A stretch of DNA of 64,000 nucleotides. Source: Amphiscolops sp. MND2022. Lineage: Eukaryota. The notes under the pieces are model-generated. The model made no database searches, was not told where the DNA came from, and saw nothing but the letters and a program-made list of their open reading frames with translations. Numbering within the stretch: position 1 is the first letter of the stretch; each line of letters opens with the position of its first letter. This document shows, piece by piece, positions 6,089-38,287 of this stretch. The DNA lies in NCBI GenBank assembly GCA_964187785.1, contig OZ076419.1, positions 34,410,001 through 34,474,000 of the forward strand, in the 5' to 3' direction. Position numbers and translations under genes: made by a program.

Positions 6089-6612
6089 CAACAAGCCGGG
6101 AACGGCCCAAGTCGGCGCCATATCTAAGGCTCAAAAATAGCAAAAGGACTTCAAAGTGTCAAGTACTCTCCTCTACAGTACCCAAAAAAAATTCCAAAAA
6201 TTTTTTGAATTTTTTTGAAGTTTCTGGTAAGTCGCATTGTACCGAAAAATGTAAAAGGGGCCCTTTGGCTGTTTTTCAACATCCATTCTTTTGCAAAATA
6301 GGAAAAAATGAAGGGTGGACCCTTCGGAGACATTAAAAAAATTGCGAAAAAAAGTCTCACAAAGCCGAAAACAATCTACACAAAAAAAATTTGGTCAAGG
6401 GCGGGACTCGGACCCATGTCCTTCCGCTTGGCAGACCTCAAAAAGCCGTAGCCTCTATGCCAGTGTGGTTTAGTGTTAGTGCCAGACAATGTTAGTGCCA
6501 GACAGCAGTGTTAGTGCTTACTTATAAAATTTATAAAATCTGTCAGTTCGTTGGTCTTAAAAAAAGTCACTACTATAGTCTGCGTTTTTCTTCGAAAAGC
6601 GCCGACTAAAAA
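6089..6612 (-). mobile_element. Helentron-associated non-autonomous element (HINE family 1) with internal tRNA-like module
   Basis: On the minus strand the 5' end is TTTTAGTCGGCGC and the 3' end is GCGCCGACT-TGG-hairpin GCCG-TTCC-CGGC-TTGTT. Paralogs at 40658, 42775, 43700 and 49364. Confidence 0.7.
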
Positions 6613-7253
6613 TCGGAATCTCGTGACACAACCCATTCTTGAATCACAGGTCTGAAGTTATTGAAGGAGGTCGAGTAGTGGCCAAGCAACTAATACATTG
6701 TTTAGCGTTTGTAAACGCAGGAAAGAATAGTTCAACCCCGTCTAGTCGATTCACCCGCCTAGTCGAGACAGTTGGAAGTTTTTCCATACTGCCTGCTGAG
6801 TGTTACTTTTATGTTTATAAAACATAGAAAATTCAGTGAAGTTCTGAGCGTAAGCCTTGTGAAGTTACACTGCAGTTTACACTATTGTATTTGAATTGCA
6901 ATTTACACGTATTGTAATTGAAATAATTTTCGTTGCCGACACCATCATGTGGTATTCACACTTCGTTTTCTCAGCTTTTCATCTCATGGGATTACGCTAA
7001 ACATGTTATTTTACAGTATAATACGTGAATGAAGTTCTTTTGCAATAAAATGGCGGCAAGATTGACAGTTACTTAATTACTTTTTAAATTAGGACTGTTT
7101 CTTAATGAACCTGCGAACCTTCGAAGCCTACAATAGCCGTCAAGTTTTGTATGTTTCTCTCCAGTATGTTGTATTTCATCAGAATAAGTATCAATAAGAT
7201 GCAGTTCGCTCGTAAAAAGGTATTCTTTCGTGTGGACTTAATAGAATTATAAT

Positions 7254-8169
7254 CAGGGGTGTTAAAAATAATTGTAGGTCACAATAATTGCAATAATATT
7301 GTATACAATATTTGTTTTCACAACATTATCAAATACAAAATATTGTATGATTTTTTGCAATAATTGTTTTACATTAAGTATAATGTGTACACAACCACCA
7401 CACAACCACGCCATGACACGCTATGCGCACACGCGGCCGCGGAAACACAGTATTTGGCTTTTCTAGCAGCCGACAACGAAAATCTCAACAAAGCCATTGC
7501 CAATGAACTGAATATCCCACTTCTTGGATGCGATTCCCATCGAAGAATTCAAACAAAGGATCTCTTTCACTATGCCCCCACCCTACACTCTTTCACTGGT
7601 TACACTATGTCCACCCTAGATAAAAGAAAGATTTGTGGCTCATTTACATTTATCTCTTCGTCATTAAAATATGCAATACATGTATTCAATGGTGTTTCAG
7701 TTCGTCCCCCTTTTTTGCTCTAGGGGGGACATAGTGAAAGAGATCCCAAAAAATTACATCACGTGTCCTTTCGATGAACGTTGCATGAATTATCCTGAAC
7801 TTGAACATTATCTTGGGCAACCAGCTTCAAGAATTGTGCATTCTCTTGTTCTTGAAAGAGCGATGTGCAAATACTTTACGACAGATCCCCTCAGCTACGA
7901 TGAAAAATTGATTTTGAGCAAGAGCTTTGGGGGAAGTGCAACTGAAGAAGCGCTGACAACTTCAACCACCGTTGAAGCCACTTCTTTTGCGGAACCAATA
8001 CTTAAGGCCAAGGCCCCGAAGATCTGTCGCGTAGAATTGATTTTTCAAACAAACTTTTTCATAGACAATAATTGCAATTATTGCACTCATTGTTCTACCA
8101 AAATCCAGAATAACAGTATATTGTTTTATGTCTCACAATAGTATTGCAATACAAAATTTAACACCCTTG
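7254..8169 (+). mobile_element. Internally deleted hAT transposon
   Basis: TIR CAGGGGTGTTAAA / TTTAACACCCTTG; perfect 8-bp TSD ATTATAAT (7246-7253, 8170-8177); transposase relics ADNENLNKAIANELNIPLLGCDSH; empty-site paralog at ~21395-21570. Confidence 0.9.
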
Positions 8170-17479: not shown

Positions 17480-17558
17480 ATGCCGAGAGATGACGCGTTA
17501 TCTACAAAGAGAGACATGCGGGAGTGTGGTTGGATTTGTGCCTGCACTCTGGCTTTGG
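17480..17558 (+). CDS. Tetraspanin-like paralog A, putative exon 1
   Basis: MPRDDALSTKRDMRECGWICACTLAL aligns with paralog B exon 1 (KREVREWAWVCSCTMAI); the homologous donor position reads G|GACAGG (non-canonical). Confidence 0.55.
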
Positions 17559-18475
17559 GACAGGGATGAACAAATAACTGTTCTGAAAAACAATTGAATT
17601 TCCAAAAAAAACGAAGGCAAATCGTTTTTAGACATGCGACAGGAGTAACGTCTAAGGAATTAAAATTCTAAATTAATAACGGTAAAAACGTATAAATTTA
17701 AAATAATTTTTTGAAAGATTTTCAATCAAGAAATATAGACGCTATTCTTCAGGTGTTATTCAAAGAACCTGAATTCCTCCATCTAATTTGAAAATTGACA
17801 CGTTTTGTGTAATGTTTTTTGGTATAATCATTATAATTACTTTTTCATTCAAAATTCTGATTTACACAATAATCAATTAGGCTGTCAGACATGAATTGAA
17901 GATTTAACTACAAGTTGCAGATTTAAAGGAAAAAGAAGAAATACATGTATTCCGACACTATTGAAAGGCGCAACTACTTTTTCCAAAATTGCCCAACAAT
18001 TTTAATGATTGGTGTTGCTGAAACGACTGGTCATATTTTTGATGTACAGCTACTGTACATCTCTAACATATATGCCCGAACTCGGCTCTTTTCTGCATCA
18101 CCCCGCCATCAAAGTTTTTGAATTTTTTAAAGTTTTTAAAACTGGGTTAATTAAAGTGAAATCTTTTTCCATAACTGGAAGTTATTTTCTATCAGAACAG
18201 TTTTTCGTTTGAACAAAACTTTTTCACACATTTTAACTGCGATTATGTTCGAATTAACGGTTTTATGTGACTCAGAACAGGAAACTGTTGATTTCATAAT
18301 CAAGAATGCGTGGCTTTATGGATAAAAATAATGTGAACAAAATTTGTTACTGGAGCATAAACTGTCACTCTGGAATTAAATTCGGAATTGAAGGTTTCTA
18401 GTTTGGTTTTTATTAGGAGTCGGAAAAAACTTTCGACTACTTATGCAATCGTGCTGTTTTTTATATATCGTGCTG

Positions 18476-19090
18476 TCCTATATGTGCAATGGCATCAAAA
18501 TCGTATGGCTGGGATGTGAGAAACATAGCCAAAATTAGCCCAAAAATGGCCAAAAAACAGTCATTTTTCGATTTTTTTTTCGATTTTCTCAAAAACTGTC
18601 CATACGATTCGAACGAAATATTCTACAGTCATTCTACACCATATTATGGTCCTTTATGTGCAATTTCATTAAGTTCCTAAGGCTGGGATGTGAGAAACAC
18701 AGCCAAATTTAGCCCAAAAATGGCCAAAAAAGTCATTTTTCATTTTTTTTCGATTTTCTCAAAAACTGTCCATACGATTCGAGCGAAATTTTGTAAATCA
18801 TTCTACACCATATTATGGTCCTTTATGTGCAATTTCATCAAAATCGTATAGCTAGGATGTGAGAAACATAGCCAAAATTAGCCCAAAAATGGCCAAAAAA
18901 CAGCCATTTTTCGACTTTTTTCGATTTTCTCAAAAACTGTCCATACGATTCGAACGAAATTTTCTACAGTTATTCTACACCATATTAGAGTCCTATATGT
19001 GCAATGGCATCAAAATCGTATGGCTGGGATGTGAGAAACATAGCCAAAATTAGCCCAAAAATGGCCAAAAAACAGCCGTTTTCGACTTTT
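18476..19090 (+). repeat. ~172-bp tandem repeat, about 3.6 copies
   Basis: Unit starts gtcct(a/t)tatgtgcaat at 18476, 18649, 18818 and 18990. Confidence 0.9.
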
Positions 19091-20464
19091 GATGGGGGTA
19101 AAAGAAAAGAACCCTGAAGTCCTCGAATTGTTCACCCCTGCTGATTGTGACAGTGTTTGGCAGTGCTTTTCTATGGCTTGTACCTCACCGTCAAATTGAC
19201 GAGTTTACCAAGACACATGGGCACTGAAGGTCCACCAACTGTCATCTTTTCCCTTTTTAAGCACCTCATCATCGATGTTTCATGGAAAATTTGCATGTTG
19301 CCTTCAATGTGAACTATTCGGTGCAAAGCAAAATCTATGCACGAAAAGCTAGGGAAGTTGCATAGATTTTTTCGCTGGAATTTCATGTTTTAGAACTGTC
19401 ATGAACACTTCGGTTAGTGAACTCACCGGTGCGGTGGTCACCACATTGTTCATTTCCGAGATTAATTTTCACGTTGGAATTGGGCTGAACTTCGGAGTTA
19501 ATTTCCGGTCTCTCAACAGAAGTTTCCCCATCTTCTTCTAGTCTCGCGTCCTGGTCCGGCCATTATAACATTTTGAATTTGAGACAAGACTTGAGTGCTT
19601 ATAGCCTCATTTATGGCTCTCTGGATTTGGGAACTGACGTTACTCATCATCTCATCCATTTCTCTAGATATTCTAGAGTTTAACTCACTCGACAACCTGT
19701 TAATTTCAGCCTGAGAATTCATGTCTGCTGAGTTTTGGCCGTAATTGGCATTTGACCTTACATTGGAATTTCTATGATCAGAGTAGGGGTTTTCCTCCCC
19801 TTCATTTAAGATATTACTCATGACACTTTCATGCCTTCTAACTGAAGTACTATCAAGACTTCCGTCCCTTTCGGTTCTATTGGAATGATTTTCACCCAAC
19901 ATGATTTCAAGATTTTCAATGTCAGATAACTTTTCTAAACCTCTTGACTTTCTCGCTTTCTTTTGTTTCCTTGTGGTAGGCAATAAGACAGAACCGGGTT
20001 GAATATTCCAAATATTGAAACCGGAAAACTAACAGAGTAACTGTATTTTGAGAATTTTGAGTATCTTTACTAGTACAAGACCAACTGACTTAATGACTCT
20101 CCCCAGCAGGGTGGTACTATTTGTACTGCTCGGGAAATGACAATCACATTTTTTACATGACTAGTTAAGAAAATAGGAATCATATGATTTACAACTTCAT
20201 AGGAAAAATGTCCCGACAACTAAATGTTATTAGGGGACATCTAAGGAATGGCATCTAAAAGTCATCTGATAAAACAGCAGCTACAAACAAATTACCGACT
20301 AAGGCAACTGTATCAAAGTGTCAACAAATACCTCCGCTGACATATTTTACAACGGAATGAAGTGAAGGCACGTGCCGACACAAGACTACTGCTGACCACA
20401 TCAAGAATGGAGTGTATTATTGCATGTAGGAATTTGATACAACTCAAATATGTGTGAAGGTACA
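19090..20464 (-). mobile_element. Truncated LTR retrotransposon: 5' LTR-like segment plus leader ORF
   Basis: TGTA...TACA-bounded ~340-bp segment (20464-20122) followed by aatagtaccaccctgctgggga and an open ORF; no pol remains. Confidence 0.55.
19513..19983 (-). CDS. Coiled-coil-rich ORF of the putative LTR element (gag-like/ORF1, truncated)
   Basis: MPTTRKQKKARKSR...EINRLSSELNSRISREMDEMMSNVSSQIQRAINEAIS; ATG start, 156 aa, downstream of the LTR-like segment. Confidence 0.55.
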   Translation of the reverse strand: MPTTRKQKKARKSRGLEKLSDIENLEIMLGENHSNRTERDGSLDSTSVRRHESVMSNILNEGEENPYSDHRNSNVRSNANYGQNSADMNSQAEINRLSSELNSRISREMDEMMSNVSSQIQRAINEAISTQVLSQIQNVIMAGPGRETRRRWGNFC

Positions 20465-21049
20465 TTTTCATGTCAAGGCCGGAATGGGCTCAAAACCATA
20501 AAATAAACGGCACATTAAGGGGACATGGTAAAATGGAAATGGCCTTAATCGTCCATTGTTTTTTGGTTGGGGATATTTGGGTATCAAAGTGATACAAATG
20601 CTTCTATTTAGTTTAAAATCATGAATTTACTAGCTCCGAGTAAATACAAGTCTAATTAAACAACAAAGTACTATAATGCATGAATTGGCCGGAACCGGCC
20701 ATTTGACCGAAGTGCTCGTGAAGGCAAGCTACTTTAAGTCAAAAGGCCTTACTCGGCCATTATAGCATAAAAGCACCTATACAACAAAAGAAACGATTCT
20801 GATTGGTTGATAAATGCGCAGCAAGTCATATCGCCGAGAAAGGACGTTTTCGCACTTGAACACGTTTCCTTATCGCGATTAACTTGCTTATTGTTTGCTA
20901 TTGCATCAATTCAACTTCACAATCTACTTTCACCTCTCAGTATACTGCATCAACGAATTGATTTGGCTAATCCCAAATCGTAATATTACAGACTAATATA
21001 AACTGCAACATATTGAAAAATATAACGGTTTGAAAACAAATAGTATTGC

Positions 21050-21570
21050 TACATGTGAGTTTTTAAAGTTCAACAGTGTACTTGCTCAAAACGTAGGTAG
21101 AGTTCCGGGTACCATTTCTTGGTTTGTTGCCGTTGTCGTTAGTTATCAGTGTGCCATCACAGGCCGCAGCCTGCGACAAGAACACTCAAGTTACTCGCGA
21201 TTCATTGGTTTTAGACAAACTTGCATCATGTGACAAGAATATAACGGGGTTCAGAAGGTCTTCGGCAAACGCTCTGGCACTGTGGATAAAACCCTTGAAA
21301 AAGAACTGGGCTATCAATTTACAGTCTTATTCTTTAAAAAAGCTTTTAATCATGGTCGGCGATTAGCTTGACGCGAAACGCTGGATGTTGTATTCTATCA
21401 GAATAGGTATTAGTAAGAAACAGTTCGCTTGTAATATTGTATTCTTTCGTGTAGACTAAATAAGAGAATTATGGATGTTCACGAATACACAAGCGTCAAT
21501 GGTTTAACAAAAAGGTTGGCAGGTACTTTGCCGTCTATCTATGCAAGTCTGACTTTTACGGTCTGAACTA
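21050..21570 (+). mobile_element. Highly degenerate LINE RT fragment; also empty-site paralog of the 7254 hAT insertion
   Basis: GTISWLLP..., NITGFRRSSANAL and FFKKAFNH echo RT motifs (RPISLL, QxGFR..ST..AL, KAFD); 21395-21570 matches 7178-7253 joined to 8178-8300. Confidence 0.45.
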
Positions 21571-23825
21571 GATACATTGACATCTGTCACACTGGAAAAG
21601 CAGTATTGGTGAACGAACTTATTTACTGGGTTGATTTCGAAAAACAACAAGTACGTTGCCGTTGTGTATACAATAACATGAAAATTTATTGAAATAATCC
21701 TAAAACAGAAAAAAACAAAGTTTGAAAAACAAATTATTCACAAATAGAAGCTGCTAGCTAGGTGTGCAATTTTCATTTTGCGATGGTTTTGTTATTACTT
21801 GGTATTCGTTAGAGAATGGTTGTACAATCGAGGTTGTGCTCGAGGTTCGGATTTTCCTCCGAAAGCATTGAACAACTGTTTCCCAACCTACTTTGAGCTT
21901 GTATGAGATATCGAAATTTTGCTCTTAATAGAAGGCCCTTTTAAAATTTTGAAAAATTACTCGTATCTCAACAATGAGAGCTTGCACTATTGTATCATTG
22001 AAGGTGGTAAGCACCTTTGAAACATGATTTGGGGCAACATCAAAGCACCACAAAAAATTGTAGTCAAAATAGGGAAGCAAAACGCTAAAGACGCTCAATT
22101 TCGCAACCGAAAAACTTCAAATGGCAAAAGCAATAAATCAACAATAATCAATAGACACAAAAGTCCCAAGAGCAAACCGCTGTTCATAACAAAGAAAATG
22201 TTGTTACAAAAAGGAGAGTTCTTCTTGATTAGTACTTGTTGAGATATTGCCTAATCAGGTTCGAAAAAGTCCAAGATTCCTCAAATAAACAATTATATAA
22301 AACTTTTGATTTTTACTCAAAACTACTGTGTTATGTGATTAAAAAACATGACCGTTGATTCCTCGAAATGTTCTGTATGGAGGAATAGTGTGAACAGAAA
22401 TTGCGTCCGATGATTTGCCACCCCCCTATACAGAATCATAAAATAGAAGCTTTATAGTTTGAGTTCAATTCATTTTTGGGATAATTCCTTTTTTGTTCGC
22501 GGCAATTTCCTTTTGCGGTGAAAACATTTTGGGAAAAACAAAAATTAAGCCTTTTATGAAGAGCGACAAGAATATGTACGATCTTGTAAGATCTTGCCAA
22601 GATCTTGAAAAGAAAAGCTGAAAAATTTGAATAGAAAGAAACAAAAACTGTTGCCAACTGCACCTTGATCAGCTTACCTCTTATTCCGCAGCCGCTTACG
22701 CTACCAATCAAGCTTTCACGTCGTGAAAAGAATTCCAGTACTTTCTATTGTCCTATTATCAACACTTCACAGAATGACGGTGTAGCTGGTAGTGCGTTCA
22801 ATAGCGGAAGTAACTTTAAACAAAAATGGTTTTGTTGCGGAAGTTAGCTATTTTCATGAGACTCTTGATAGGACTGTTGCCAAGACTCTCAGTAGGAAAT
22901 TCAATATGTTTGTTTGAATGCAAGAATAAACTAGATCTCATAAAGACTATCAAAAGTAAACGGGAATATGTAAGATCGCGGCAATAGTTTCGGGAGCTCA
23001 GTAAAAACATAGTAATAAGAGTGTGAATGAGCTCAAAGAAAAGGAGCTTGTTTTTTGTTTAGGAGGTTGTAGGTAGTATGAGAGAGGTAGTATAGAGAGG
23101 TCGTATGATCAACTCCTTGATCAAGGTGTACCCCTTGAACTTGAACATGAACCCAATTGTGAGACTGTTCTGAGCTCTAAGTGGAGTTAATGAAGCTGTT
23201 AAAGTAGGGGTCATAACTGCTACGTATTCCGTACTGAGACTCTGTCCATGTTTATCGATGACCATTGCAATGGCTATCGATGAGCTATAAATTGAAGCCG
23301 AAAATCTGTCTGATGAATTTTTTTTGGAAAATAAGATGAATTTTGACACCGGGAAAACGTAGTGAGACCTAATAGGTAATGCCAACGTGTGTTTACTACA
23401 AAAGTTTCTTTCCTAGAAAAAAACATGGACTTTCGAAAAGGTTATTTTGAACTTTCGAAAAGGTTTTTTTTGAGCCTTAGAAAAAAAATGATTTCTTCGA
23501 AGTCCTGTTCGGACTCATGCTCTCTTTTTTGTTATGAAGGTTGTTTTTTTCTATGAATTTTTTCGACTTGGGTGACCATTTAAAGCTTGATGAATGCATC
23601 CATTCCGGGAATTTTTTCGTTTGATTATTGTTTCTGACTTACGGAAAAGGTTAGAGACCCTTTTATGCATGCATGCTCATTAAATCGAACTCATTTCGAA
23701 GTCCTTTGTACCATCGGCGTTAATGTTGCAGAAATAAAATCATGCCTTGTCCCTCGTTACAATAAAAGTTACTAGAAGTTAGGCTGATTTTATTGACTGA
23801 AAGTGGGAAAAGATGAGGTGCTAAG

Positions 23826-23951
23826 GTTTGATGTTGCTGGCATTCAGCTCGTTTGGCTTCATTGCACCTACTGGGGGGTGTCTCATTTGTGCTACCATCT
23901 GGTACAGGGTGCGAAGAGACATGGAGTGGGCACTCGTCTGCTGTGTGGGAG
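23826..23951 (+). CDS. Tetraspanin-like paralog A, exon 2 (TM1-EC1-TM2 start)
   Basis: GLMLLAFSSFGFIAPTGGCLICATIWYRVRRDMEWALVCCVG aligns with paralog B exon 2; acceptor taag|, donor G|GCAAGA (GC). Confidence 0.7.
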
Positions 23952-24057
23952 GCAAGAGTGTGGAAATTCTACAGAAAATAGATTGAAAACAAAAGCAAAA
24001 GACCCAAATAAATTTTAAAATGTTCCAAAAGTAGTACCAACGACGAAATTTGACAGA

Positions 24058-25592
24058 GAGGCGGAAATTTCGTCGTCAGAAATTTCGTCGACAGAAATTT
24101 CATCGGCAGAAATTTCGTCTTCAAATTTCATCGTTGTAATTAAGAATCGTCATTTATTATTGACTCTATTTATCCTAATAATTATTGTTAATTTGCGACA
24201 ATTGCGACCATTTTAAGAATGGTTTTTGTAGAGAAAGTTTTGCAAACAAAATTTTAACTATTCTTAGAAAATATTCCACTTTAATACATTTTCATATACA
24301 GTACTGTGATTGAGAAATCGTCCCCCTATGTGCTGAGCGTCGTTATCAACCAATTAGAATTGCTTATTTGCTCTCACTTTCAATTCTTATTGGCGCATCA
24401 AGTGAAATCTCCGGCGCAGAAAGAACACTTCTCCTATTTTCACAGTTTTGGGCACGTTTTTTGCAAAATTTTGCCGAAAATTTCAAATTCATCGAATTTT
24501 GCAGATTGTATAGAATTTAATGATATATTTTTTGCATCAAAAACATTCTAAATAAAAAATAATTGCAGTTTTTTTTGCCTCGAAACGTTCATTTCCTATC
24601 TTAGTACATGAAAAACGACGAAATTTTACCTTTTGAGTATGATATTTCGATAACGGTTGACAATTTTTGAAACCTAAAAACATCCATAGATTCAGTAGCT
24701 TTGTGGGAGTTATTTGAGCATAAAACTTGCCAAAAAAACTGTCGATAAAACGGTCAAAAATTGGAAAAACTGACAAAAGTCCCAAATTTGCTCAAAATCA
24801 GTTATTTGTAATTTTTTCAATTTTTATCCCACAAAAATTATAAAACCACGGATCTTTTCTGTTAATTCCCCCCACCAATTTAATTCCCCCCCCCCCAGTT
24901 AGGCGGTCAAATGAAATAAGGATTGAATTAATAGTAACAACCAATCAAATTGCAGTATTCTATAACTCCAACTGCAACTGAAACTCATCGCTGATAGTGG
25001 TGGGGAATTAAAATTTCCGCGCTTACTGTGGGGGGGGGGGGATTAACAGAAAAGGTCCAAAACCACTATTAAAAACTAGATTAAATTCGAAGAAACTTTT
25101 ATTTCTGATGTTTTTCAAAATTCCCAACAGATTTCAAGAAAATCGAGCCTAAAATTGTCCCGGGGACGTTTTCTTAATCACAGTACAGTATTTCCTGCAA
25201 CTTTTAAACATGTTTTTGAAAGTTGCTTGGTAAAATACTTCAGGACTGAATATATCACATTGTTCAATACATAAGCGTCTTGATGAGTTGATTGAACGCA
25301 ATCAACTTTTTGACTCTTTGTGCAGAACTTATAGTAACCACTACAGAAATTATAGTCTAGACGGATTTCTCAAATATCGGAGCTGTAGTGTAATGGTCAG
25401 CACGTCAGGTCACGACGTCAGGTGCTAATACGACGAAATTTCCCACGACGATGTTTCTGTCGACGAAATTTTTGGATGTGCTAATACGTCGAAATTCCCC
25501 ACGACGATATTTCTGACGACGAAATTTTTGGATGTGCTAATCCGATGAAATTCCTCACGACGAAATTTCTGATGACGAAATTTCCATCTCCC
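24058..25592. mobile_element. 1.5-kb foldback-like TIR element (GAAATTTCGTCG family) with nested MITE
   Basis: Left gagaggcggaaatttcgtcgtcag, right gacgaaatttccatctccc; interior 24310-24830 homologous to ~32360-32850. Confidence 0.7.
24850..25058. mobile_element. GGATC-terminal MITE, second copy
   Basis: Same TIRs as the 9967 copy; 8-bp TSD AAAACCAC (24842-24849, 25059-25066). Confidence 0.9.
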
Positions 25593-25921
25593 GCTTTTTG
25601 ACGCTTTTTAAAGAAAATGAAAATACTATTCTAATGAAAAAGTGTTCTATGTCTATGTTTTAAACTGTTCTCATGAATAACTATTCAAAAACCCCTTTTG
25701 TAAAATTTCTCGGAAACTCATTCAACATCTTTAAGTGTGTGTTTATGAAATTAGTTTTTGAAGGGTTTTCGTCGAGTTTTCTCTTTTGGAATCATTTCAA
25801 TCTAGAGTTTTTTTGGCAGTGTAAACCTCAAACAACTGCCACACAGAAACATCGTTAGAGTCAAATTTTCTTCGCATTTTAATCACGTGTTTTGAAGCCC
25901 CGTTTTGTTCACTCGAAAAAG

Positions 25922-26126
25922 TTTTGAGTCTACACCCTTTGGTCGAGGCGGTGCTATGGGCGTGGTTTTGGGGTTCATGGGTATCTGTGTGTTTTGTGTT
26001 GCACCTATCACTTTAGAGAACGCCCAGCATAGAATAGATGCTGCTATAAGGGCGGAGTTCGAAAACTACAACCGAGACGTGAATGCGCAAAATGACCAAT
26101 CCAACCAATTTGACGAAACCCAACAG
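25922..26126 (+). CDS. Tetraspanin-like paralog A, exon 3a (TM3, EC2 start)
   Basis: TPFGRGGAMGVVLGFMGICVF...EFENYNRDV...FDETQQ aligns with paralog B; 5' boundary uncertain (apparent frameshift versus the homologous acceptor). Confidence 0.7.
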
Positions 26127-26638
26127 GAAAGTTTCTTCATTCTCCCTCGAAGTTTAAATTTGAAAAAAATAATGGTGAAACTTAAAAACTTGACTTGGTA
26201 GTTTATAAGATTTCAAATTAGCATTTAGTCACAACAATTGTTTTTTTATCGAATTATTTTTTTCTTTTCGAGGAACTGGGATAAAAATACTCTGAACGTT
26301 CTCTATAAATATGGAGAAACTAGGTCATTTTCGTTCTCCATATTTATAGAGAACGTTCAGAGTGTTTTTATCCCAATTCCTCGATAAGAAAAAAATAATA
26401 CTCGGAGTTGAAAAAATTCCTTAGTATGTATCCCTGTTAGTGAAGCACTGTTGAATAATTATATTAATCGAGTATTTTTCACTAATGCTCAGTAGCAGAA
26501 AAAAGCATCTGAAACTTGGGATAGTAAAAACTTAGTCATAATCGTTCTGGCCAAAAAATCACAAGAATTACCTCACGGTTATATTTATTTCCTTGGACTG
26601 TTTCGGGGAAAGTGAAGAGAAAACCATTTCTCCAACAG
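26127..26638. mobile_element. 512-bp insertion in the tetraspanin A coding exon (candidate TE-derived intron)
   Basis: CCAACAG duplicated (26120-26126, 26632-26638); imperfect terminal inverted similarity; absent at the homologous position of paralog B. Confidence 0.8.
26254..26398. repeat. Near-perfect ~65-bp-arm inverted repeat (hairpin)
   Basis: Arm 26254-26318 versus 26334-26398 with a 15-nt loop actaggtcattttcg. Confidence 0.9.
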
Positions 26639-26690
26639 AATTGGGCTTGCTGTGGCGTCGCTGGACCCGGAGACTATCCATACTACCATG
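26639..26690 (+). CDS. Tetraspanin-like paralog A, exon 3b (CCG motif)
   Basis: NWACCGVAGPGDYPYYH; acceptor ttctccaacag|, donor G|gtgtcc. Confidence 0.8.
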
Positions 26691-28416
26691 GTGTCCCGTG
26701 TCGAAATAATCGGAGAATCTTTTCACATGTTGTTCATCTTGGCGGGCGTTTATTTAAAAAATCACCAGTGAACAAAACGTTAAAATTGAAAAAAAATGTC
26801 AAGCAACATAATTGTAAAGATGAATTGACGTCGTGAAGCAAATTCCAATACTCTATGACTTTGAAAATTGCACTATTTTGGAATGCATTTTCCAAAGCTC
26901 ATTGAGTTTTATTTTCAGTCGGTTCTTTTTACCAAAAAACCAGACTATTGCAGTGACTTGCTCTTTTTGTTCTTTTTTCTTCGGAAAATCCCGCATTGAA
27001 GTGTCCACTTTTTTATTCGGCACATTTGATAAGGAAATGGTCCCGACTATTACAGTGACTACTAGTTTTTGTAAGACCATTGAATATATGCGAATGGTTC
27101 ACTTTTCAACAGTTTAGAGTTTGTTCAAGTAGCCATCCGAGCTTCCCAAGCAGATGGCCATAGGTTCGATGTCTGCCTAGCGCTAAAGATCTGTTTGCAA
27201 ATGCTTGACATGTCAAAGGGTCCCCCTTTTGTTTCAACATTTAAAAAAGAATTTTTCAAACCTAAAGGTCCCATTTTTGGGTTTGTGGAACTGTGCGACA
27301 TTTTCCGAAAAAAAATCATCAATTTGGATATTTTTTGATGTTTCCGGTGAAAGGAAAGCGTTTTTCTGGGCCGTTTTTTGGATGTCCCTTCTGATATTTT
27401 AGCCACTCTGAAAGTTATGAAAACATCCCAAAAGCCAACCTGATCATTTTATTGAGATTTTGAGCTTTTTGAGCTTTAACAGGGGCCTTCCTGTCGTTTT
27501 GTTCACCTTCGTTAGCGGTTCAATTTTGCTGTAGAGCAATTGTAAAATATATCTAGAGCAATTTTTCCAAGCTAAACAAATAACAAAAAGCCCGCCTTTG
27601 AGGTATTTCAGCACTATGCGAAATTTTTAAATATCAGTGCTGTTGAATATCATACATAATTGCGTGGTTAAGCTCGTGAACCGAAGTTGCGATTATATAC
27701 TATTCCCTTTCACGCTGTGCTTGTCCTGTTTTGCAAAAATGACATAATTTTTCTTGGCATCGTTTTTAGAGACTATCGTAACCGTGGTTTTCGGTTGGCG
27801 GAATACTTGCTACTTTAGCAATAAAGGACTTTGACTGATCGGATGATATCCATGAGAAGCGGGACCTTCTCCCCACGTGACAACACTAAGGAGCCACCAA
27901 GAGCCTATTGAAAGATGCGAGGCCGTTCAGTATGAAAAGCAGTGCCCATCCCTCTGGGTATCTTTAGCTCACAATTGCAAGCCACGCGGCAGCTTGTCGT
28001 TACATTGCTTCTATTGGTTTCTTGGACCTCGTGTATTTACAGTTTTCAGCAGTTTAGCGTTTTTGGCTACAAACTATTCGAGACTTCAAAAAAGTTACCT
28101 GAAGTCATTAGGCTTTCATTTGGCCGCAGAGAGTCATTGTTCCAGAGACTGTAGCTTCGAACAACAAAAATGTGCCAAGTTATCGCACTTTCAAGCAGTA
28201 AACGCCAACAGTAGAATTGAAATTTCTCGAATTTTCTCAATGAAGGAAACAAAGCCAAGGATCCCAATGAGGATGTTTTCAGCCCACGAAATTTGTTCGA
28301 AAGTGTTGGAAAACTTGAATAACAATAAGAAGATAACAATAACACTATTTCAAGCAACATTTCAAATAAATGTTTTCTCAATTTGTCCAAAAATTTTGAT
28401 TTTAAAATTCGACCAG

Positions 28417-28703
28417 GGATCGACCCGCCCCCCTCGTGCTGTGGGAAACCCCCTTGCAGAAACAGAGAAGGCTTATTCAACAAAGGGTGTCGCTTCGTTA
28501 TGACAGACGTGTTTTTCGTGGCCAAAGTGATCTACGGGATTCTGGGAATCTTAACTGGCGGAGTTGTGATTTTATGGTTTTTCATAACTATCAAGTTGAT
28601 TGATTATAAACACATTTTAACCCGAGAACCCGAAGTGAATACTCTTGACGCTGATGAAGATGACGAACATGAAATCGATGTCGAACATTTGAAGATGGAC
28701 TGA
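28417..28703 (+). CDS. Tetraspanin-like paralog A, last exon (PxSCC, GC, TM4, acidic tail)
   Basis: IDPPPSCCGKPPC...NKGCRFV, TM4, ...EHLKMD*; acceptor ccag| in compatible phase. Confidence 0.85.
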
Positions 28704-33750: not shown

Positions 33751-33817
33751 ATGAGAGATAGAAGGAAAAGGGAGGTTCGAGAATGGGCGTGGGTCTGTTC
33801 TTGCACAATGGCGATTG
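33751..33817 (+). CDS. Tetraspanin-like paralog B, exon 1
   Basis: MRDRRKREVREWAWVCSCTMAI; donor G|gttcct inferred from phase and homology with paralog A. Confidence 0.65.
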
Positions 33818-34759
33818 GTTCCTGTTTAGCTGTCTTGATTCACTGTATTTACTTCGTCATAAAATCCGCAGCTTTGCCAAAGCATGTGGGAATAGAAGGA
33901 CAGTGGAACCACCACTTTTCCCAGACTAAAAGAAAACGAATTGAAAATTACAATATTGAATGTAATTACATGTACATGTAGCTACATGTGGTAGAGGCAT
34001 TGTCTTATCTTCATACTTTGTACAGTGTAACTCGCTTAATTTCACACCGGTTAATTTCACACCTCGGTTAATTTCACAACTAATCAAATCCCCTCCCCAA
34101 TAGGTGTGATTTCCCTAATCAAATCCCCAATGGGTGCGAAATCAAGCGAGCTACACTGCAAAAGCTATTGTGAGAAAATAGTTAATTATGCGTATTTACT
34201 GACAACCTGCCAAAATGAGCTAAAGTGGCAATATTGAAGTCAGCCACAAAATCAAGATGCGTCACAAAAGTTTTGACACATTCAATCTCTTCTGATTACA
34301 ATGGCTAGTTCGAGTTGCAAGACTACACTACATGTAAAGTTTTCAAAAACCGGAACACAGAAAATACTGTGACCGGCGAGAATTTTGAACATCTTGAAAG
34401 TTTGAAAAACATTCGAAAATTGAGCAATACAATCTCATACTGAATTTCACTTGAAAAATAAACGTCTACTTAGGTGTCTAATAAAAATCTATGAATTAAC
34501 TATAAAACAATCATTGACAACGATTGCAATCCGTTTTGTGAAAACAAAAAACTTGAAGCCAGTCCTAGATATTTTTTCAGAAAATTCAAGGTTTCAATAC
34601 CAATTTCACTGTAAATGTTGTAAATGATCATAGCGTACAATAATGCGCATTGATTTTGGCCTCCGAAGGATATATAATTCATATAAAATATTTTTAAAGC
34701 AATGTTCAAGTGATGTTTTGTGCTAAGATTGAGCAAATGGGAAAGGAGACTCACTGCAG

Positions 34760-34882
34760 GTTTAATTTCGCTGAATTTATGCTCAATGTTGGTTTCTTTG
34801 ACTGGTGCGTGTCTCGTTAGTGCAGCTGTTTGGTACCGAGCACGGAAACGACTAGAATGGGTTCTGGTTTGCTGTGTCGGAG
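34760..34882 (+). CDS. Tetraspanin-like paralog B, exon 2
   Basis: ctgcag|GT...GLISLNLCSMLVSLTGACLVSAAVWYRARKRLEWVLVCCVG G|gtagga; TM1-like with conserved Asn. Confidence 0.8.
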
Positions 34883-35563: not shown

Positions 35564-35824
35564 TTACTATCCTATTTACACCCTTTACTCGAGGTGGAGC
35601 CATGGGCGTTGTTTTGGGGAGTTTTGGAGTTTGCACTTTCTTCTCTGTTCCTTCAAACACGGACGATGCACAAAAGAGATTGGATCCATTGCTAAGACAC
35701 GAACTTGAGAGTTATGACAAAAATGTTGTCATTCAAAAGAAGCAACAAAATGTTTTCGATGCCACTCAGCAAAACTTTGCTTGCTGTGGAGTGGCAGGAC
35801 CGGGAGATTGGCCCTTTTACCATG
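35564..35824 (+). CDS. Tetraspanin-like paralog B, exon 3
   Basis: ttttacag|...TPFTRGGAMGVVLG...QQNFACCGVAGPGDWPFYH G|gtattt. Confidence 0.88.
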
Positions 35825-38003: not shown

Positions 38004-38287
38004 GCATGGACCCACCCCTTTCATGCTGTAGCAAGTCCAATTGCCCCAATAAAGAAGAATTATTCAACAAAGGGTGTCGTTTCGTGATGGCCCAGGTAAT
38101 ATCTGAGACCAAGACTATAGTAGCTGTCTTGGGATTTTTGGCTGCCATAGTAATGACTGTGTGGTTAATAATAACTATCCCACTAATTGACTACAAGCGT
38201 ATACTGACGGAAGAACACGAATTGGACTCACTTCAAGACGGAGATGATACAAATGAAGGTAGTACGGAGCATTTAAAAATGGATTGA
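38004..38287 (+). CDS. Tetraspanin-like paralog B, last exon
   Basis: MDPPLSCCSKSNC...NKGCRFV, TM4, ...EHLKMD*; the four exons join into a 244-aa ORF. Confidence 0.88.

Follow-up and report, generated by a model that had tools for sequence, protein, structure and literature searches.

A transposon-like insertion in a tetraspanin exon of the acoel Amphiscolops sp. as a candidate GA-AG intron

The window analyzed in this study, a stretch of 64,000 nucleotides from Amphiscolops sp. MND2022 (contig OZ076419.1, positions 34,410,001 to 34,474,000), contains two tandem tetraspanin genes on the forward strand. Their exact models were built on relatives that an HMM search had returned (P0002, P0003, and P0004) and on tblastn. 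Paralog A (17480–28703), modeled by tblastn with P0002 and P0003, encodes 267 aa in six coding exons (17480–17563, 19154–19229, 23826–23951, 25948–26126, 26639–26690, and 28417–28703), and paralog B encodes 261 aa in the coding exons 33751–33898, 34760–34882, 35594–35824, and 38004–38287. Each model is a complete ORF and contains the CCG, PxSCC, and GC signature; in the 267-aa model of A, the EC2 cysteine signature reads CCG, PPSCC, and KGC and is accompanied by four hydrophobic stretches. The Pfam domain Tetraspanin (PF00335) was detected in exon 3 of B (E = 3.7e-7, profile positions 99–152), in exon 4 of B (E = 5e-4, profile positions 160–219), and in the full-length relatives P0002 and P0004. 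The exon pieces of A, scanned singly against Pfam, gave no match. Apart from A and B, the 1.07-Gb genome has no member of this subfamily.

A preliminary description of this DNA had proposed that 512 bp are inserted in A between the peptides FDETQQ and NWACCG, and the translations of the exons on either side place this insert at 26127–26638. Exon 3a of A (25948–26126), which encodes TM3 and the start of EC2, ends with ...FDETQQ, and exon 3b (26639–26690) reads NWACCGVAGPGDYPYYH(G) and is followed by the donor ATG/GTGTCC (a slash marks the splice junction). As was also described, paralog B is uninterrupted at this point. Its exon 3 (35594–35824) reads FDATQQNFACCG straight through, the A and B proteins align gap-free over the junction, and the point homologous to the insert site lies between positions 35772 and 35773.

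The CCAACAG duplication reported to flank the insert is exact (7/7 bp), with its copies 512 bp apart; the chance of a 7-mer repeating at a fixed spacing in the window is 1.7e-4. The left copy (26120–26126) is coding (T-Q-Q) and its AG forms the obligatory exon-end AG, while the right copy (26632–26638) is the putative source of the CAG acceptor. The candidate 512-nt intron (26127–26638) is thus made up of a transposon-like body of 505 bp (26127–26631) and the right copy of the duplication, all on the forward strand.

The imperfect inverted ends noticed earlier proved to be stronger than first thought. The ungapped detection of inverted repeats found 13 nt only, and the gapped alignment of the ends spans almost to both termini: it takes in the first base of the insert and, on the other side, leaves out just the one base adjoining the right repeat. 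Its score was matched in 0 of 1000 shuffles. The 5' terminal inverted repeat arm occupies 26127–26171 and the 3' arm 26581–26631, with the gapped alignment reaching position 26630. As RNA, the segments 26131–26171 and 26581–26621 are predicted to form a duplex of -27.0 kcal/mol (z = -4.96, the top z of the 51 introns tested). None of 1500 genomic decoys equaled this value, and the end-to-end pairing was retained in the minimum-energy fold of the entire 512-nt intron. A duplication of 7 bp, an inverted repeat, a second inverted repeat, and again the 7-bp duplication, in this order, match the build of a small DNA transposon. The assignment of the insert to the hAT superfamily is not supported: hAT elements have an 8-bp duplication and YARNG ends, whereas the insert has a 7-bp duplication and the end GAAAG (CAGGA if the exonic CAG is counted).

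An internal near-perfect palindrome of 147 bp (26253–26399) with 66-nt arms that are 95% complementary sits off-centre in the insert and may represent a foldback element nested there or give rise to hairpin RNA. The Rfam search with this palindrome gave only sub-threshold generic miRNA-hairpin matches, which do not support a known RNA family. Its right arm differs between the two haplotypes by a 2-bp indel and one substitution.

The search for sequencing runs found four for the source, all DNA-like and from one sample, and no RNA run that contains the locus; the four were used to confirm the DNA. The short-read unitigs of this sample cover 25504–27628 with zero differences and at single-copy depth, indicating that the assembly is correct here. 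No joint skipping the insert was present among the best-supported unitig joints listed, and the unitig that spans the insert is unbranched and single-copy. Searching the genome with the insert, entire or in parts, returned self-matches only, and the scan of the window for look-alikes of the insert found none elsewhere in the window. As the insert is single-copy, it does not belong to a multi-copy introner family; of the earlier label "introner-like", the mechanism stood and the multi-copy family did not. Since a second copy of the element is absent from the genome, the assignment to transposons is made from the anatomy of the insert.

Removed exactly, the insert leaves a complete 267-aa ORF in A, with the frame and the colinearity with the homologues restored. 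Retained, it introduces a stop after 24 codons, ahead of the CCG motif. The repeat permits eight excision offsets, all of which give the identical mRNA and none of which is GT-AG, GC-AG, or AT-AC. The best of these non-canonical offsets is GA-AG, and the set also includes AG-AC, which is the same excision slid 2 nt to the left. This agrees with the earlier proposals that exact removal requires a CAG/GAAAGT donor and that the acceptor comes from the duplicated CAG, which the right copy of CCAACAG indeed supplies. The features of the GA and GG donor class are present at the insert, namely the exon-end AG, the A at position +3 (G-A-A), and the lineage-specific position. The acceptor context is weak (polypyrimidine tract 0.45), and no obvious branch point was found in the candidate intron.

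Taken as a whole, the reading that the insert arose in A by insertion after the A/B split and is removed as a 512-nt intron with a GA donor seems to us probable, though by no means certain. A non-autonomous DNA-transposon-like element of 505 bp with terminal inverted repeats of ~45 nt would have landed in exon 3 of A after A and B separated, duplicating 7 bp of its target (CCAACAG). The element together with the right copy of the duplication would then leave the pre-mRNA as a 512-nt intron. Its acceptor CAG would come from the duplicated target and its donor would begin at the first base of the element, directly after the CAG of the left copy (CAG/GAAAGT, a GA donor); written as AG...AC, the excision gives an identical product. 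The ~40-bp helix of the inverted ends, which begins 5 nt inside the 5' end and ends 17 nt before the 3' end, may bring both weak splice sites together. The junction of the spliced mRNA would read ...CCCAACAG/AATTGGGC. Splicing itself, the pair of boundaries in use, and the role of the helix are what we infer here from the sequence.

For the survey of donor usage in this genome, the introns of HSP70, actin, and tubulin genes were resolved against intronless paralogues. Among ~56 introns, ~51 were GT-AG, three were GC-AG (found in L046, L055, and L064), and two were GG-AG, so that about 90% were strong GT-AG introns. One GG-AG intron lies in the alpha-tubulin gene L064 after residue 269 (GAACAG/GGATGTTC). 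The other lies in the actin-like gene L046 at 1044–1414 (AAAAG/GGATTTTT), where it is the sole choice that restores the invariant LNPKANRE. An exonic AG precedes all five non-GT donors of the survey. A GA donor was found in none of the ~56 introns of these genes and nowhere outside the tetraspanin pair. Within this pair, the non-GT donors are CAG/GGATGA in intron 1a of A, GAG/GCAAGA in intron 2 of A, and AAG/GACAGT in intron 1 of B. As judged by homology, bases other than T at +2 are tolerated after AG in the case of G and C, and support for the tolerance of A at this position comes from inside the tetraspanin pair. With the exon-end AG, the A at +3, and the GG-AG and GC-AG introns of conserved genes, GA-AG appears to be a credible splice form for the insert.

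The other introns of the tetraspanin pair also differ between the copies. Intron 1 of B (33899–34759) has the GA donor GAAG/GACAGT at a position where A has GT (GAAG/GTCCAC), and complementary arms near the intron ends are kept in both copies. Intron 2 of A (23952–25947) has the GC donor GGGAG/GCAAGA, and B has GT there. A second A-specific intron, 1a (17564–19153), interrupts exon 1, a coding stretch that B and the related gene L005 have in one piece. This intron begins with the GG donor given above and ends with ...GTGACAG/, and its start CAGGGATGAAC pairs with the reverse complement CAGGGGTGAAC near its 3' end. We take this start to resemble the terminal repeat of maize Ac. The GG-AG introns of L046 and L064 and intron 1a of A have a common start (AG/GGAT...) and a common end (...(T)GACAG/), which points to shared membership in an element family or to a shared signal. 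The ends of the GG-AG intron of L046 form 15-nt inverted repeats (13/15 matching).

Introns are lacking from the BiP gene of this genome, as they are from several of its HSP70, actin, and tubulin genes. Among named taxa, BiP (L013, G000:C6:37258596-37260410) is closest to that of the acoel Convolutriloba macropyga, at 91% identity, and the others reach at most ~83%. A copepod origin of the DNA, considered in view of the GA/GG rule and of relatives from marine metatranscriptomes, was rejected on these identities. Logan contigs of 2.2–2.3 kb match BiP at 96–99% and represent public transcriptome-like data from this or a sister species; the tetraspanin was found in none of them.

The main competitor of the GA-AG intron is a gene broken by the transposon insertion, in which the insert is kept, translation stops at 24 codons, and the ORF is still intact for lack of time to decay. 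In its favor, no RNA run with the locus was found, and the matches in protein databases are only genomic ORF calls (P0005, P0001, and the cluster-mates P0008 and P0009), of which P0005 runs into the insert. No transcript-derived protein turned up when 1.8 billion representatives were searched with an HMM, or in two word-based searches. The lack of GA donors among the introns of conserved genes and the weak acceptor context point in the same direction, and B could take over the function of A. The comparison of haplotypes argues against it. The insert is present in the second haplotype too (L006), which is 97.6% identical to the window over 4.6 kb. The two haplotypes show 2 differences per 351 nt in the exons, both synonymous, 9 per 510 in the insert, and 76 per 3718 (about 2%) in other non-coding DNA (exon versus non-exon divergence, Fisher p = 0.064). 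No nonsynonymous change was seen where ~5 were expected (Poisson P ~0.005, a hand estimate and not the output of a tool). L006 also keeps the GA of the donor and the A at +3. Between A and L005, dN/dS is ~0.07, with dS saturated. Moreover, the junction has the form AG/G-N-A...AG/ seen in the homology-verified non-GT introns of essential genes of this genome, and the GG-AG intron 1a, also specific to A, would need to be a disruption too, although all six exons are open. Taken together, these observations make a broken gene unlikely.

The junction occupied by the insert in A is contiguous in B, in L005, in L009, and in the mRNA-derived P0002. L005 is a gene 76% identical to A, a distant, orthologue-like copy whose source is a different, metagenome-style assembly from a related animal, and L009 is a further relative that serves as an outgroup; the metagenome scan for more relatives found no additional loci. 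The position being empty in B, L005, and L009, and the duplication and the inverted ends being the marks of an insertion, a gain in A after the A/B split, as originally suggested, is the simplest reading. An intron ancestral to A and B that was lost from B and L005, by which we would see loss and not gain, draws on the tree, which prefers ((A,L005),B). This preference is weak, as L005 as the outgroup to A and B is not rejected (AU test, p = 0.09). If ((A,L005),B) is true, L005 has lost three introns common to A and B. All three may have gone through a single cDNA-mediated event, by which the insert would have been erased too, so the empty site of L005 no longer counts as independent evidence. 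Nevertheless, such a history is improbable: the 7-bp duplication and the terminal inverted repeats are intact, the outgroup L009 is without the intron, and B retains three neighboring introns, so that one precise single loss would be required. Even then the intron would still be insertion-derived and merely older.

Both L005 and L009 contain private introns, which differ between them. L005 is without all five introns of A and has two of its own, at 6485–7242 and 7393–7843. The first is a GG-AG intron directly after CCGI (TAG/GGATGT...GGAATAG/). The second, in TM4, is of the GT-AG type and lies between the copies of an imperfect ~19-nt direct repeat (ATTGCCG/GTATC versus ATTGCAG/GCATC). Intron turnover in this tetraspanin gene is high, judging from these comparisons.

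Finally, the canonical splicing offered as an alternative in the preliminary description, with the donor GAAA/GT after 26130 and the acceptor ...GAAAG/TG before 26613, is indeed GT-AG and in frame and would add EMKRKPFLQQ before CCG, but it is very improbable, as its GT (26131–26132), the sole canonical donor in the vicinity, reads AA in the haplotype L006, its donor AAA/GTTTCT and purine-rich acceptor fit the strong GT-AG consensus of this genome poorly, and the addition would fall at a conserved spot where no relative has an insertion.

The creation of introns by transposon insertion, with one splice site provided by the target duplication, is established, and introners or MITE-derived introns are known in Micromonas, Aureococcus, dinoflagellates, and others (PMC11282704). 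Like the insert of A, introners are short non-autonomous elements that lie in exons, carry terminal inverted repeats, and have a target-site duplication; one of their splice sites is taken from the element and one from the duplicated target, and their removal restores the mRNA. They differ in having many similar copies and GT-AG borders, whereas the insert is a single copy with a GA donor. The A locus is therefore neither a member of a multi-copy family, as introners are, nor an intron following the GT rule of canonical introns.

A closer parallel for the donor is the copepod Eurytemora affinis, in which GA and GG make up ~12% of the donors; these always follow an exonic AG, have A at +3 in nearly all cases, and occupy positions specific to the lineage (PMC5714493). 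These introns (Robertson 2017) share with the insert the non-GT donor, the exon-end AG, the A at +3, and the lineage-specific position, and in both cases the full-length protein requires constitutive removal. In contrast to this acoel, where GG and GC prevail in our sample, GA predominates in the copepod, which belongs to a different phylum, and no transposon anatomy is described for its introns.

The larvacean Fritillaria borealis has young MITE-derived introns with non-GT-AG borders (Henriet et al. 2019, via PMC11282704). As far as they are summarized in that review, they resemble the insert of A in being young, species-specific, transposon-derived, and non-GT-AG. Slid by 2 nt, the insert and the GG-AG introns of this genome become AG-AC or AG-AT, which are the commonest Fritillaria types according to the same summary. 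It also gives nearly all Fritillaria introns as non-canonical, unlike the conserved genes of this genome with their large majority of strong GT-AG introns. The nonconventional introns of euglenids, too, lack a polypyrimidine tract, have inverted repeats that join their ends, and carry duplication-like junction repeats, but their borders are pyrimidine/purine, they are not thought to be under G...AG rules, and the lineage is unrelated (PMC11282704).

No paper on such introns in acoels was found in our literature search. Clear cases of intron gain are rare in animals. At the A locus, the empty site, the target duplication, and the inverted ends are all still legible, and it thereby shows how an exonic insertion may survive as an intron; taken alone, it is a single instance of moderate individual weight. 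Should RNA confirm the GA-AG removal, the animals in which the +2 position of the donor is relaxed would come to include acoels, next to copepods and larvacean tunicates, and gene prediction in acoel genomes would overlook introns of this kind. A testable idea for the pairing of weak splice sites is offered by the terminal helix.

The end-to-end duplexes of the introns tested had a mean z of -1.86 for non-GT introns (n = 9) versus -0.09 for GT introns (n = 42; Mann–Whitney p = 0.0015). Good pairing is also seen in those GT introns of the tetraspanin genes that are lineage-specific, and it is not seen in the old introns of the actin, tubulin, and HSP70 genes. Pairing thus tracks the youth of an intron, i.e., its transposon origin. 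A tentative extension, which we hold to be possible but rather doubtful, is that acoels have a whole class of young transposon-made introns in which any base at +2 is accepted as long as AG closes the exon and the inverted ends zip the splice sites together. If so, structure-assisted pairing would allow an exonic insertion to be tolerated at once, and the A locus, with its empty paralogous site, would be a cleanly datable example.

Several introns of A contain high-copy repeats. A very high-copy repeat is nested in intron 1a at ~18402–19090 (135 matches scored; 6025 first-look candidates). In intron 2, the read depth over 24042–25580 is 10^4 to 10^5, which marks extremely high-copy nested repeats, and short repeats of the CGACGAAATTTC type are present at both ends (~24040–24110 and 25400–25590). 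Another high-copy repeat, with a read depth of up to ~10^4, lies at 26949–27461 inside intron 3/4 of A.
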